DNA from: Dimorphilus gyrociliatus
Lineage: Eukaryota > Animalia > Annelida
DNA: 64,000 bases
Reading direction: 5' to 3'
NCBI GenBank assembly: GCA_904063045.1
Contig: CAJFCJ010000001.1
Span: forward strand, 3,472,001 to 3,536,000
This document shows, one piece after another, positions 10,938 to 27,512 of this stretch; position 1 is the stretch's first letter, and the number at the start of each line of letters is the position of its first letter. Both the position numbers and the translations under genes were made by a program. Below the pieces are notes generated by a model that did no database searches, had not been told where the DNA came from, and saw only the letters and a list, made by a program, of their open reading frames with translations.

Positions 10938-12250
10938 AGGCTAGTTATATATTGGTCTTGTCACTTTTGTTTCCCTGCTTTTTCTCTTGTCCGTTTGTTT
11001 CAATATAATTCATCATCTCATACTTTTATTATTATTATAATTATGTTAATTATTAATATATTATCATATATAATCTGTTCCTCGCATCATCGTCATCATC
11101 TTCATCGTTATCGTCAACAACATCATCATCATGATCATCTTCTTCTTCTTCTTCTTCTTCTTCTTCTTTTCGTCTAACTATTAATGATTGGATATATTTT
11201 CCGTTTGGAAATTTTAGGAGTGGAAAAAGACTATCTAACAGTTTTGACAATAAAACTGAAAATAGATAAAATTAACGGTAATTAATGGGAAAATGCTCAT
11301 TTTATCAATAAAGAAATGAATATATGTATGCATGTATGTATGTTTACACAACGCAAGAAGATGATAGTAAATACAATTTGTTTATTTAATCCCAATCTTT
11401 TGGCTAAAGACTCTTGAAATGTACTAATCACTTTTTGACTCTAAAAGTGACGCTTAACAAAAGTAAAAAACGAAGAAAAAAAACAGATAAAAAGATAAGA
11501 GGAAGCGAGACAAGACTGATAAAAACAAAATCAATCTAAAAGTCTAAAAGAGTAAAGTCGCCTTCTTTCCTTCTTAGCGTTCCGTTATTTTTGGTTGTCA
11601 TTCCCACAATAATTGCTGCCTTTAATAGAAAAGTGGAAGGGTTAAACGTCTTTACGGTACGTTTACTGTAATGATTTTATTGTCAAAATGTACTATCCGT
11701 ATGGTCGTATATACACCAGGATTTTGAGTATAAATACAAAAAAGACATGCACTGGAAAATTCTTACAATATGCATAGAATCGTATTCTTTAATAAGCTAA
11801 CCGTAACACGTGAGGATATTGAAAAGATTATAGTTTTACAATAAGTTAAAAAGGCATCAAAAACGATTAAATTATTACTTCAAAGACGCCTTTCATCTAT
11901 CTAATAAAATCGTTAATTTTTACCTTTTGTATTCAATAACAATCAGAAACTTTTTTCCACTAGTTTAATTGTTTTTCTCTTTTCCAGTTAAATTCACTGT
12001 TTTAGATGTATTCTTAACTATTCAATTCTCTATCTTTCCTCCTCCTCCTCCTCTCTTTCTCTCAACTCTTCTCTTCTTCGTTCCCTTTCAATAAAAGAGA
12101 TAGTTCAAAAAGTTCGCGAAAAAAAAATTTACGTTACCAATCAGAAAATCATAGCCAGAAGTATATCGACGCCTCCTCTTTTCGATTTCTCCTCTACGCT
12201 AGGTGTCCTCCCGGTTGGCGACTAATCATCACTTTTCCAGATGACTTTCA

Positions 12251-21302: not shown

Positions 21303-23032
21303 ATGGGCTCAAAATACAAGGAAATCCTGCAAGCTAACAAAACTTTGTTGACCAAGAACTTAGTTCTTTGCAGAGATCTCTATGACAAACTAGTAGAGAA
21401 TCACGTGATTGGTATAGCAACAATGAAAGATATAGAGGTAAGTACATGTGTACTGAATGAATGAATAGGAAGACTAATTAGAGGTAATTAAAAAATATCT
21501 AGTTTATAACAAACAAATAAGTCGACAAAATATTTCTCAGCAACTAATCCAGGAACGTCAATAAAATACTCATTCAAGGTGGAGTGTTTGCTTTGAATGG
21601 TAAAATACCTAATCTTCTCGCATTCCTTTCACTTTGTAGTTCTCTGATCAATCTCGTAAATCTAGTTAATTATACGAAACTAGATTATATTAATAATTTT
21701 TAAATCCTCCCCATTCTTTCAATTGTTAATGGGGTTTTTTTTTATTGTTTTTTATAAAAAACAAAAAATTTCTTTAAATAACAATAACAATAATAATAAA
21801 GGTAATAATTAAAGAAAAATATTTTTCACCCCGTTTTTATTGTTACAATAGTTATTATTTAAAATAACACCTAGTTATTTAGATATAAAATGAAAAGCTA
21901 TTAGCTCTCTACTCCTTATACTCCTTATCCTCCCTCACTCCCTGCCACCCACTCCTAAATAAACGCTTTGCCGTCTCTTTTTCCGAATCGAACTTTTTTG
22001 CAATAAATAATCAAGTAGAAAAGTAGAGGGAAATATAATATATATATATATATATATGTATAGAAAATACTCTTTATCTTCTTAGCATTGATCGGGCGTT
22101 AAGGTGTAGGAGTTTATTACTCCGTTTAAAGCCCTAAAATCTGACTGACTGAGTTTTTTTTAAAGAAATCTTTCTGGTAAATAAAATAGAATTGAAAATT
22201 TATTTTAGACTATTTTTGCATTGATTTCTACAAAAAATATTGCTATTTATAGTTTCTTTTTATAGTAAAAATAACAATTTTAACCTAAAAACATATATAG
22301 AATAAGGTAAAAATAATGGTGAAATTTTTCTCCTGTTTATAATGAGATTATCGAGTGGCTAAGGGCGATTCTGTTAAAAGTTGCCTTCTTTTGTTTCTTT
22401 TTTTTCCATTCAATATGGCCCTAACCACTCCTCTCTTCGCCCTCTTTTCTCTCTCTCTCCCTCTCTCTCTCCCCACCACCTCTCCTCTCTACATAGCTCA
22501 TTCAGGTTGACAAAAAACTAACTTTTCACCCTTTATGAATAGAGTAATTTGAAAAAAAATCATTAAATTACTATTACGTCTCCTCTCGTAGCTAGTTTTT
22601 ATTATTTCTAAACGCTCGCCGCGTCTAAATAGCTCGAGTAGATCGTAAAAAGAGGGGAAAAGTTAACGGATAGACGCCTTTACGATATTGTTTAAAATAG
22701 TTGCAAACATTAGCTCTTAATAAACTTGTATAAGGAATATATACGATCCGATAACGACGACAAACAAACAAGACAAACAAGGATACATTGTTTTCGAAAT
22801 TGATTATTGTATAAATCGTTGCTAAACGCAGTTTTGTTCACTTGGTCGGTCACGTGACTACTGTGTTTATTTTATAATTGTTCAAGTTAACTATGAATAA
22901 ATTAAAGATGTATAGAAAGAGAATTCAAAGGTAAACACGACAATGAAAGTAAGGAAGTGTGATAAAGTAGGAATTGCTAGAACTGAGAGAGTCTCTTAAA
23001 TAGATATAGAAACAAAAAAATGTAGAGAAGAA

Positions 23033-23085
<53 letters not shown>

Positions 23086-25349
23086 GGGAGGGAGGGAGGG
23101 AGGGAGGGAGGGAGGGAGGAAGAAAGAGAAAGAGAAGAAAGTAAAAAGAGTGAATAATTAAAAGAATGAACGAAAAGTAAAAAAAAAAAAAAGTTATGAT
23201 TGATTAAAGATGAAAATTTCTTTCAAACAGGAAACCGAAAGTCAGGTTGAAAAGACGTTGAAATTGATTGAACACGTGGGTATTAGAGGAGACGGAGGAT
23301 TTACAAAGTTTTGCGACAGTCTTAGTTTAACGGGACATTGCTATTTAGCAGACTTCCTTAGAGATGAAGGTTGAATAGCCATTGTTATTAATAATTTTCT
23401 TAGTTATTTTCTTTTATATTTATTGTTCTTGCTTAAATCCATTGTCCTTGACTTTTTCTTCCCTTTTTCTAGACAATATTTAAGCAGTTAGAAGTGTTGT
23501 AAATAAGAGAAATTGATTTCCATTTTTCCATTGCATTTCATACCTTTACCACTTTCGATCTAATTATTAAACCATCACATTACTTTTCCTCTTCATCACA
23601 TCTTTATTACGTAAATCCATTTTTATTAGCAATTTACTCAATAAATACAATATATAGAACATAGAAATATATATAATCAAGATAACCAGTAAATATAGTC
23701 ATTTTCTAATTAATTAGTTAATTAGAAATAGAAAAAAATAAGATATACATTGTTTCTTCTTCGTTAGTCTATTTACTATTAGTTCTCCTCCTCCTCCTTG
23801 CTTTCTGTTCTTTTGTCCTCAATCCATCCCACTTGCTCTCTCCTTCTTTCTTTCTCTCTCTCTCTCTATCCAACAACGTGTGTATACTTGATTGCATTAT
23901 TTCTCCACTTTAGCATGTGCATCTTTGGAAGAGAGAAAGAGTCAAACTGATCAAATTTCAAGTCATTTGCCAAAGAATTTCTTAAAAAATGTTACCGAAA
24001 AGCAAAAGGAAGAATTTATAGCTCTTATTAAAGATCTTATTAACGAATTAGCTTTGAAGCAAGCCTGGAAAAATGAAAATAAGGAAAAAGAAAAGGCGAT
24101 GGATGCTAAACAACAACAACTAGAGGATGCTTGGAAGTACAAAGAGATAATAGCCGAGAGGGATCTAACTATAAAAACACTCGAAGAGTCTTTAATTGTT
24201 GCCGTTAACGAGGCTTCTGATCATGAAAAGATTGTCTACGACCTCAATAAGAAGATCGAAAAGCTCAAAGAAGATCATGAATTGCAATTAGGAAAACAGA
24301 TGAAATTCAATATGGCAAATGAAAAATCCCTGCAAAGACTCACTGAAAAGCAAATGGAGAATGACAAAGCTTTTAGCGACTTGAATGATAAAATGGAAAA
24401 GGAATTAAATAGGTATAAAAGTTTATTGGAATTGCATAGGCCTACTTCGGCTGAAATACTCGATACCGCCGTCACACCGACTGACAAGGCGAGGAAACAT
24501 TTAGATTTAATTCTAAGAAGACTAAACGATTTTGAACAAGTACAATCGCAATTAGACGCTGTCATGGTGGAGAGGGATACCCTATTGAAACGTCTAGACA
24601 TTGATAAGAAAAACGTTCCAGAAATTGGTAAATTAGACGAAGTATGGCTTTCCTATACAGCTGGAGTCGAGAGTCGAATAGCTGAATTGGAGACGTATAT
24701 CGCCTCCAAAGACAATGATATTGTCAATTTGGAAAGGAAAAGGGAAGAGGGAATAATGCTAAAGCATAATTATCTACAATTGGAAGAGGCCATCTCGAAG
24801 AGAGATAAGCAAATTTCAGTTCTGCAGAATGAAATTATGAAATTAAAAAATGAGTTGGACAAATTTAGGGACGACGCTAAGAAGGATTCAATAAGAATCA
24901 AAAGGCCAAGAACTCCTATAAGGAAATTCTCGGCAAGGAGAAATTCTTTAGCAAGTAGCCTTCTCGACTTGGAGGAGGAGACTGGTAAAAAAGATTCCGG
25001 TTCACCCATGCCCATACGTTCTAGAAAGGACAAACTGCACAACGGCAACCTATTTGCATCGGATGATAATCAAAGAGGGTCTACAATGGCTCAAACAACT
25101 TACGGAGCTTCTAATGAAACGTCTATATCCCTCCCTTCTTTAACTAAAAACCCTCTGACAAAGTCTCATCACAAGGTTACCGCAGCCTTACCTAAGAATG
25201 GCCGACCGCTAGGTAGTTATTTGCAGCAAGCGCCACCTAGTAGCTTTCTACAAGTATCGGCTTTTCAAGGAAACGGAGGTATAACTAGTAACTATTCAAA
25301 GAGTATGAACACAGTTTCGGAGATAGCAAAAAGAAACTCTAGGTTTTGA
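21303..25349 (+). CDS. CARD-coiled-coil protein, 569 aa, 3 exons
   Basis: Exons 21303-21437, 23231-23369, 23914-25349; sum 1710 nt; phases 0 and 1 match. Exons 1-2 give a CARD (KEILQANKTLLTKNLVL...LKLIEHVGIRGDGGFTKFCDSLSLTGHCYLADFL). Exon 3 gives a long E/K/L heptad region and a Ser/basic tail. Confidence 0.85.
23036..23118. repeat. (AG)n-(GGGA)n compound microsatellite
   Basis: Seen directly in intron 1 of the CARD gene. Confidence 0.95.
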
Positions 25350-25867
25350 CTAAAGGAACCCAACTTAATATACACGAAACTATTGAGACAATCAATCATG
25401 CAGAGATAGCTCCTCTCCCTCCTCCTCCTCCTCCTCCTCCTCCGCCTCTCCTCCGTCCTCTCTTCCTTATAAGAAAAACTTTTTCTTTACATTTCGGTTG
25501 TGTTTTTCTGTTTTTTTTTTGAAGTTTATACGAATTTTCTTTACTTATTTTTTTGCACGGAAAACTTATTTTTGTATTATTATTTAAAATGTATTCTTTA
25601 TATTGAAGGTAATGTTTATTCTCTCTTTTTGACACACTAATTAACTACTAAGTATATAAGCGTATACTGTATATATACAGTATATAATATACTGTATACA
25701 ATCATTAATAAAATGAATAAAGTATATAAAAAGATTATTTAAGTCATTTGTTCTTCATCGTCATTGGGATAAAAATCTTCGGGTTTTACTAACAGTCTAT
25801 TTATAAGTATCTGCTTTCTATTCTGCCTCTGTTTGCTGCTGCTGCGCTACTTCTCGTTCTACTCCTC

Positions 25868-27512
25868 CTATAATTTCAACTTTAAAACTACGGGGTCGCC
25901 TAGCACTAGTTCGTCGTCATCTTCGAACCATTCAGTTCCGGCGATCTTATAAAAATCGGGTGTTATTTCGGTATTTAGACCACTGGGTGCAAATTCTACT
26001 TCGGAAGATTTTTGATGTTCGCCGATAACTCTTATCTCTGGATCTTTATTAACGTCTTCACTTTCTGTTCTTATTATCTCCGGTTTTTTTTCGACCGGAA
26101 AAGTGTCATCATCTTCTAAAAGGCTGAAGCTGTTTTAGAAAGATAAAGATATTTTTATACACATATTCTAATGTAATGGAATGTTATGCCTACTTGAATC
26201 CTCCTACGAACATATCTTCTCCTGTACAACCTTCGGGAAGGGGTCTTTGACTAGGGGTCTCGTTCAAAAGATTTTCCTTTTTCGCTGCTTTCGCCTTTCT
26301 TACGTAGACTATTGTAAATAGTAACGCGCACAAGGCCATAAAAGCTGTTATGGAACCGAAGACAACTGCCAAAGGAGAAACACCTAATCGAGGTATATTG
26401 TCATCTTGGCAAACGAAGAGATCGGGCTTCAACGACATAAGGATCTCTCCTTTCAAATGTTTTGGTGTACTGCAAAATGCTTTGTCCGTTTTATTGAGCA
26501 TAGTAATCCTTAAATGTTTCAGGTGACAATCGCAACAAAAATGATTATTAGATATGAGCAGGTTGGTTAAACTATTCCAAAATGGTAGATTAGGGGAGAT
26601 TTTTTCAATATTCGACGACGAAACGTCTAGATAAGATAATTTTGAGCATTTAATAAAAGCATTGTCAGGAATCTCCGTCAAGTTTGTGTTCGACATAGTA
26701 ACAGTTGTTAACTTGGGAAGATCACTAAAGGCAGACATAGCCATTGCCTGAATAGGATTCGAATCAAGTTTAACAACAGACAAGTTAGGTAAACTGCAAA
26801 AAGAGCAAATTGGGAGTTCAACAATAGAATTATTAGTTAAATCAACACTTGACAACTGTAGTAAGGAGCCTGCTTGAATTTCGGGTAAAGAATTAATATT
26901 ATTATCTTTCAAGTATAGCCTTTCCACGTATTTCATTTGTTGATTAAAGATACTTCCGGCGATATTGTCTATCTGACAATTTTCGCACTCGAACGTTTGT
27001 AAGATTTGAAATGATGCTGGAAAATTAGTAATGTTCCTCAGTATATTCCCGTTTAGTTTCAGAACTTTTAACGACTTGAAACTACTCCATACTGATTCAA
27101 AATTCAATGTTTCTTCTCTAATAGAATTTCCTCCTAAATTCAATTCTTGAACATTTTCAAGCCCTTTGAACAGTTGAATGTTTTCATTTAAACTTATTTC
27201 ATTATCCGCCAAGGAAAGTCTCTGTAAGTTCGTTAATTTTTTAAACGGAATTTCTTTGAGGAGAGAATCGTTTAATCGATTGCGTTCCATAATCAAATCC
27301 ATTAAATTATCCATACTTCCAATCTGATTAAAGTCTTGTTTACTAAGAGTTTTTCCAGTCAAATTCAATGATTTTCCCTGGGCCTGGGAATTATTGGCTT
27401 TCGGAGGCGTTTTTTCCTTCGGAATGACCATAGTTAATATACTAGAAGTTGGCAGATTATCCGTAGCCGAGAATAAACAGAACAAGACGAAAAGATAAGC
27501 GTAATAGATCAT
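25868..27512 (-). CDS. Single-pass LRR transmembrane protein without TIR, about 526 aa, 2 exons
   Basis: Exons 27512-26194 and 26129-25868 (64-nt intron AA|gtaggc...aaaacag|C). Signal peptide, typical LRRs, LRRCT (NNHFCCDCHL...C...P...C), TM PLAVVFGSITAFMALCALLFTIVYV and an acidic tail. Exact donor uncertain. Confidence 0.88.

Follow-up and report, generated by a model that had tools for sequence, protein, structure and literature searches.

A three-exon gene of Dimorphilus gyrociliatus predicted to encode a member of an unnamed spiralian family of CARD-coiled-coil proteins

The 64,000-nucleotide (nt) stretch of the annelid Dimorphilus gyrociliatus analysed in this work (GenBank assembly GCA_904063045.1, contig CAJFCJ010000001.1, positions 3,472,001 to 3,536,000 of the forward strand; hereafter the window) contains a gene that was confirmed, as judged from its sequence, to consist of three exons spliced in frame into a 569-amino acid (aa) product with an N-terminal CARD, a long coiled coil and a disordered basic tail. 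All three exons were assigned by sequence profiles to a conserved and unnamed family of spiralian proteins, and the gene is thus no orphan. The family CARD was found by profile and by the predicted fold of one member to be of the apoptosome/PIDDosome type, nearest to those of caspase-9, RAIDD and Apaf-1. We consider it probable that the gene encodes a family scaffold working by CARD clustering and partner recruitment.

A full HMMER scan of 1.84 billion proteins, with a query profile made from window exons 1 and 2 and the CARD exon of a paralogue in the same genome, returned 66 matches, about 25 of them representative proteins of 490 to 675 aa whose CARD sits at the extreme N-terminus. These proteins derive from gastropods and bivalves (two subfamilies), from the brachiopod Lingula, which has at least three such genes, and from one annelid (Owenia) and one nemertean (Tubulanus), with a shorter relative of 438 aa in the rotifer Rotaria; examples are UniProt V4BEU0 (Lottia), A0A8J1UT10 (Owenia), A0A1S3HT10 (Lingula) and A0A8S3RKL2 (Mytilus). 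In more than 20 species the window exons match single proteins in order, exon 1 covering residues 1-45, exon 2 residues 48-91 and exon 3 approximately residues 97-490. The best exon-3 match was a Lingula protein (78 bits), and against the family post-CARD profile exon 3 scored 97.2 bits over positions 15-218 and 299-380, all family profiles having been built from 24 family proteins, none of them from this genome. Two family-specific post-CARD blocks, W....EK.KA..AK..Q.E and Q.KFN.AN....RL, are present in exon 3 (alignment A6). In small alignments, MAFFT set the beginning of exon 2 in the wrong place; alignment A3 was nevertheless used for the large scan, the misplaced residues agreeing with their columns. 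Neither exon 3 nor the family alignment gave more than a negligible return in a word-index search of proteins, in which coiled-coil words filled the 8000 candidates, and this search was uninformative on relatives. A preliminary description of the locus had called the encoded protein uncharacterised and proposed that its distribution be checked. The searches go beyond that description in finding both a conserved spiralian family and a paralogue in the same genome, and the adjective still applies, as we found no paper citing six family accessions or describing such a family in a literature search of incomplete coverage.

The relatives are catalogued as CENP-E-like, CLIP1, CEP290, myosin-9, myosin-like, JAKMIP3-like, ERC2-like or AKAP9-like proteins, and some are labelled "CARD domain-containing protein" in UniProt. 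Taken at face value, many of these names would make the product mainly a coiled-coil protein of structure or trafficking, at the cytoskeleton, centrosome or Golgi, in which the CARD serves as a generic homotypic docking module, and Pfam searches of exon 3 did return only weak matches to coiled-coil families. However, the names mislead because coiled-coil composition alone drives them; none of the diagnostic domains of those families is present and the conserved post-CARD blocks are specific to the family described here, making this explanation quite improbable.

The exon and intron boundaries are compiled in Table 1. Exon 1 ends at a gtaagt donor (21438), exon 2 at a gttgaa donor (23370) that is the sole GT escaping the TGA at 23373-23375, and exon 3 begins after a tttag acceptor with a good polypyrimidine tract. 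The single base carried over from exon 2 joins the first two of exon 3 (G+CA) to give an alanine codon in frame with the 485-aa open reading frame (ORF), and the coding sequence of 1710 nt closes with a TGA at 25347-25349. The splice sites, the frame and the family profiles thereby bear out the proposal of the preliminary description that two small exons join this ORF in frame. An alternative in-frame AG at 23930-23931, 18 nt downstream of the exon 3 acceptor, could shorten the product by six residues. Owenia and Lingula likewise have an exon 1 of exactly 135 nt with GT directly after it, and ORFs holding exon 1 only or exon 2 only on short contigs of other species terminate at the same residues as the window exons. 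The family intron layout, with a phase-0 intron after codon 45 and a phase-1 intron after the CARD, is present in the window gene, and the residue counts over both exon junctions agree with the family alignment. Together, the family alignments and the conserved intron positions provide strong, albeit indirect, support for the three-exon splice model.

These observations also bear on whether the locus could hold two genes, a small one encoding only a CARD (exons 1 and 2) and another, the 485-aa ORF, encoding a coiled coil. As such an arrangement would have it, the donor of exon 2 is weak, with a stop one codon into the read-through, but single proteins carry all three pieces in order, the intron positions are conserved, and near the 5' end of exon 3, where the polypyrimidine tract and AG lie, there is no start codon. 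In the exon-3 ORF an in-frame ATG first occurs after about 70 codons, within a conserved helix, which makes it unlikely that exon 3 begins a separate gene. A division into two genes is therefore barely credible. Since read-through of the exon 2 donor adds one glycine before the TGA (23373-23375), a transcript retaining intron 2 would encode a CARD-only product of 93 aa, possibly a decoy isoform.

Sequences from other sources touch on the same exons. In Logan assemblies of public reads, P0006 is near-identical to exon 1 (2 of 45 residues differ) and P0001 is near-identical to the CARD exon of the worm paralogue, which indicates that a closely related species or strain has already been sequenced; both run on into the intron and so provide no splice evidence. 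In Lingula anatina (LFEI02000355.1), two similar 69-nt cassette exons (10981-11049 and 12559-12627 of L026) separate the first CARD exon of the Lingula family member from the one that follows, and encode an insert in the H3-H4 loop of the CARD. These cassettes may be mutually exclusive, with isoforms X1-X3 listed at NCBI.

The CARD is divided between exons 1 and 2, and domain and profile searches of the window gene were accordingly made exon by exon. Exon 2 alone matched positions 44-84 of the 85 positions of Pfam CARD PF00619 (E 0.0067, 16.9 bits), and no Pfam match was obtained for exon 1. Against the family CARD profile, exon 1 scored 41.1 bits (positions 1-46) and exon 2 scored 48.7 bits (positions 45-91), and the remaining CARDs detected in the genome scored below these window exons even as whole domains. 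Among the members of the family profile, 21 of 24 matched Pfam CARD at E<=0.01 (best E 1.1e-10), P0019 reaching 28.8 bits, above the cut-off. The window CARD ends in the family motif TGH.(F/Y)LAD.LR(D/E)E.

Searches of the half-CARDs against the PDB were weak, with the CED-3 CARD as the best match of exon 2 (E 0.26) and only noise for exon 1. The family CARD profile, searched against all PDB sequences, matched caspase-9 (38 bits, E 8e-9) and RAIDD (35 bits, E 5e-8), followed by Apaf-1 (25 bits), NOD1 (20 bits) and CED-3 (19 bits), and CARD9, CARD11 and BCL10 were not matched in the same search at E<=1. Similarity of the CARD9 type is detectable where present, because two controls from this genome found it: its Bcl10 CARD retrieved BCL10 (E 3e-12) plus CARD11 and CARD9, and a half-CARD exon with a CARD9-like helix-6 motif (L014) retrieved CARD9 and CARD11. 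Another exon intended as a CARD9-type positive control (L013) matched nothing in the PDB on its own. The predicted fold of one family member pointed in the same direction as the profile. P0004, the database protein closest to exon 2, was folded with the family alignment, and its CARD, predicted with a predicted local distance difference test (pLDDT) score above 95, best matched the procaspase-9 and Apaf-1 CARDs (template modelling score 0.82-0.86; 26-28% identity to caspase-9), with CARD9, CARMA1 and BCL10 at rank 33 or lower. Nearly all PDB entries among the matches listed were CARDs or CARD-based designs, ARC among them. Outside the family, the nearest matches in the large HMMER scan include CARD-caspases, a protein combining a CARD with a death domain, and proteins with several CARDs. 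In the preliminary description the domain had been labelled a caspase-2/RAIDD-type CARD, which these results make reasonable; the peptide quoted there in support was a caspase-2 sequence and not that of the window, whose CARD shares only the RG..F..FC..L..T skeleton with it.

The arrangement of CARD, linker, coiled coil and Ser-rich region is also that of CARD9/CARMA (CARD-CC) proteins, and the gene might be a divergent true CARD-CC orthologue acting upstream of Bcl10 and a MALT1-type paracaspase. The shared layout favours this, as do the presence of Bcl10 in the genome, the co-occurrence of CARD-CC and Bcl10 reported in annelids and molluscs (PMC5978004), and a protein language-model search in which the nearest named clusters were CARD9 (score 0.86, below the informative level of the tool). 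Against it, the family profile misses CARD9, CARD11 and BCL10 while reaching caspase-9 and RAIDD at about 1e-8, and the Bcl10 CARD and CARD9-like half-CARD controls do reach CARD9 and CARD11. Staal et al. 2018 (PMC5978004) described CARD-CC orthologues in invertebrates (oyster, two in Capitella, Helobdella and cnidarians); the CARDs of the Crassostrea, Capitella and Helobdella proteins end in a CARD9-like helix-6 motif, "LE..YP..(F/Y)...(I/V)T", whereas the window family has "TGH.FLADFLR(D/E)E", and separate CARDs with a similar "YP" helix 6 occur in this genome. The window gene has its CARD directly before a coiled coil, and has neither the CARD9/CARMA subtype nor the helix-6 motif. We regard CARD-CC orthology as rather improbable and read the language-model score as reflecting shared architecture and not kinship. 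The suggestion in the preliminary description that the CARD9-like layout is possibly convergent remains a fair reading, given the different helix-6 motif and the separate "YP" CARDs of this genome.

Beyond the CARD, Pfam searches of the window gene exons identified no other domain and specifically no protease (Peptidase_C14), NACHT or death domain, in agreement with the preliminary description; for the death domain there was no match in exon 3 and none within the span of the window in the genome scan. With the family alignment as input, AlphaFold2 predicted three long helices in the exon-3 product (Table 1), and the helical part of about 300 aa contains no proline or glycine, has about 45% charged residues and shows heptad periodicity in segments, consistent with the coiled coil of that length proposed earlier. 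Numbered along the exon-3 product, W52 is nearly invariant in the family, Q129 and A135 are invariant and N136 is nearly so, the last three belonging to the signature within helix 1 (Table 1). The basic, Ser-rich tail noted in the preliminary description corresponds to a region predicted to be disordered, in which its two motifs were located, RPRTP at exon-3 residue 331 and RRNS at residue 342.

Table 1 Features of the CARD-coiled-coil gene in the window.
Feature	Position	Strand	Description
Exon 1	21303..21437	+	ATG at 21303, 45 codons ending GAG, phase 0; CARD helices 1-3
Intron 1	21438..23230	+	1793 nt; AG/CT-rich microsatellites; position conserved across family
Exon 2	23231..23369	+	cag acceptor then GAA; 46 codons + 1 base (G); CARD helices 4-6
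Intron 2	23370..23913	+	544 nt
Exon 3	23914..25349	+	2 bases, 477 codons + stop; without further intron
Conserved post-CARD linker and family block W..N.KEKEKAMDAKQQQLE	23914..24100	+	Family alignment A6
Three long helices, read as coiled coil	23997..24887	+	Exon-3 residues 29-174, 189-227 and 238-325; pLDDT about 90
Family signature QMKFNMANEKSLQRLTEK within helix 1	24297..24350	+	Family alignment
Disordered basic Ser/Thr/Pro-rich tail	24891..25346	+	Exon-3 residues 327-478 (about 150 aa); pLDDT <50, composition
Basophilic phosphosite-like cluster RPRTP, RKFS, RRNS, then acidic stretch	24903..24947	+	Sequence motifs
Two AATAAA polyadenylation signals	25707..25721	+	About 360 nt past stop

The genome searched for further CARD loci was the window's own assembly (77.9 Mb). 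The paralogue of the window gene, retrieved with the window exons as queries, lies on contig 3 (G000:C3:2940336-2942108 (+); L024:1337-3109) and has four exons, a CARD 38-52% identical to that of the window, and a shorter coiled coil ending in a basic tail. Its CARD intron sits elsewhere, after SLT and in phase 2. The tree of both worm copies within the family was poorly resolved and no timing of the duplication was drawn from it. Altogether, the scan identified 18 CARD loci, and the genome carries many caspase and death-domain loci. One CARD-caspase (G000:C4:1823167-1824180) encodes a CARD and Peptidase_C14 in one frame, and a Bcl10 homologue (G000:C25:715038-715271 (+); L001:1435-1797) has a CARD matching human BCL10 with E 2.7e-12. 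CARD exons with the CARD9/CARMA-like helix-6 "YP" motif were found at G000:C7:3762753-3763442 (-) (L005/L014) and at G000:C19:3266694 (L013), the latter followed by a coiled coil, and either locus is a candidate for this genome's true CARD-CC orthologue. No NB-ARC match was obtained in the genome scan, which, searched exon by exon, is suggestive only; it agrees with the published loss of APAF-1 (PMC11463336).

Other CARD loci of the genome were recorded in passing. A 249-aa frame at G000:C1:1062874 (+) (L003:1414-2160) encodes a CARD and then a region resembling a divergent death domain; it is a candidate CRADD, although the CARD alone is recognised by Pfam. Two identical frames of 296 aa that form an inverted pair, at G000:C1:2360052 (+) and G000:C1:2368982 (-) (L010 and L011), encode a CARD together with a coiled coil of a third kind, with no match to the family post-CARD profile. 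A CARD-Bcl-2 fusion and a Roc-COR-CARD protein are also among these loci. L002, initially suspected to be a CARD-coiled-coil paralogue, was rejected, as it combines a CARD with a C-terminal region that has no coiled coil and appears TPR-like by eye.

CARD9 offers a precedent for how such a protein could operate, its CARD being held by the linker and coiled coil until released (PMC11874512), and it is by analogy with this autoinhibition that we infer a mechanism for the window family as an oligomerising CARD scaffold. The coiled coil would hold at least two chains, placing their CARDs side by side. Release would plausibly be triggered by phosphorylation of RRxS-type sites beside the last helix or, alternatively, by lost contact with the conserved post-CARD linker. 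Released and clustered CARDs could then seed a helical CARD assembly, which would recruit a CARD partner. Because the family CARD is nearest to those of caspase-9, RAIDD and Apaf-1, the favoured partner would be a CARD-caspase, such as the one at G000:C4:1823167-1824180, or a CRADD-like adaptor, over Bcl10.

Several points weigh against this scaffold reading. CARD subtype similarity is an unreliable predictor of the binding partner, and Bcl10, being present in the genome, may yet be the partner; the nearest language-model clusters, as mentioned above, were those of CARD9. Neither half-CARD alone reaches the Pfam PF00619 threshold (23.9 bits), as expected for half a domain, and the full-length product of D. 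gyrociliatus was not found in protein collections. Motifs of the RxxS or RRxS-acidic kind recur at the start of the tail in Lingula, Owenia and Mytilus members in a weakly aligned region, so that conservation of the RRxS site in the family is suggestive only.

The same apoptotic-type CARD, in a protein without an effector domain, could instead serve an inhibitor or buffer comparable to ARC/NOL3 or to CARD-only decoys, with the CARD capping or sequestering CARD-caspases or adaptors and the coiled coil anchoring them away from platforms. ARC is among the structural matches of the family CARD, and the product of intron 2 retention would be of the CARD-only kind. Known decoys, however, are short or acidic-tailed and lack conserved coiled coils of 300 aa, and the strongly conserved post-CARD blocks point to an organised scaffold. 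We consider an inhibitory function unlikely and retain the scaffold reading as the probable one.

With regard to the pathway in which a scaffold of this kind could act, APAF-1 was reported lost in molluscs, annelids and brachiopods, and CRADD was proposed as the CARD-caspase activator (PMC11463336). The window family might be a phosphorylation-switched, coiled-coil "apoptosome substitute" in these three groups and possibly in other spiralians that carry the family, an oligomerising platform for CARD-caspases on which its caspase-9/Apaf-1-like CARD would seed the activation of initiator caspases. This more specific proposal is speculative and, on present evidence, unlikely to be correct. If it were true, the CARD9-type scaffold would have been invented independently a second time, here coupled to cell death and not to NF-kB.

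The family is a concrete candidate for a CARD-caspase activator in clades reported to be without Apaf-1 (PMC11463336): it is conserved, lacks an effector domain, is presumably prone to oligomerise, has gone unrecognised under misleading names and is present in those clades. It also appears to build the CARD9/CARMA design of CARD, coiled coil and phospho-linker with a different CARD subtype, which bears on the evolution of death-fold signalling hubs. Even if its members were merely Bcl10 adaptors or decoys, their recognition would be a useful annotation correction in many spiralian genomes.

The DNA of the window is AT-rich (about 32% GC) and eukaryotic. Downstream of the CARD gene, a single-exon ORF of 440 aa (26190-27512 (-)) converges on its 3' end, with a product containing leucine-rich repeats, a C-terminal Cys-rich cap and a transmembrane helix. 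A (CCT)n microsatellite at 25410-25450, in the 3' untranslated region of the CARD gene, reads as poly-Pro in the ORF list, and GAGG/CT repeats lie in its introns at 23100-23125 and 23860-23875. The strong GC skew at 20-22 kb is due to these (CCT)n and GAGG/CT microsatellites.

Among known systems, CARD9 and CARMA1-3 are closest to the window family in overall design, sharing an N-terminal CARD, a short conserved linker and a long coiled coil, after which comes a Ser-rich region containing basophilic kinase motifs; at 536 aa, CARD9 is also similar in size to the window product. The likely logic, by analogy, would likewise be shared, with a coiled-coil oligomer, seeding by the CARD and release by phosphorylation. 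The two groups differ in CARD subtype, do not share coiled-coil blocks, and the MAGUK part is absent from the window family; moreover, annelids and molluscs have their true CARD-CC orthologues in other genes. The window family thus appears to copy the layout of CARD9, probably without belonging to CARD9/CARMA by descent. ARC/NOL3 resembles it in having a CARD of the caspase-2/RAIDD kind, a low-complexity tail after it and no effector domain, but ARC is a protein of about 208 aa that lacks a coiled coil, has an acidic tail rich in Pro and Glu, and acts as an inhibitor. The caspase-9/Apaf-1 and CED-3/CED-4 systems provide the closest solved CARDs by profile and fold, CED-3 being the best match of the window's own half-CARD, whereas the window gene has no caspase domain, NB-ARC or WD40. 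Oligomerisation of the Apaf-1 type relies on a nucleotide-driven ring, for which the window family would use its coiled coil. RAIDD/CRADD, the second-best solved CARD match, is likewise a non-enzymatic adaptor, with a CARD that binds caspase-2; RAIDD oligomerises through its death domain in the PIDDosome, whereas the window family has a coiled coil instead.

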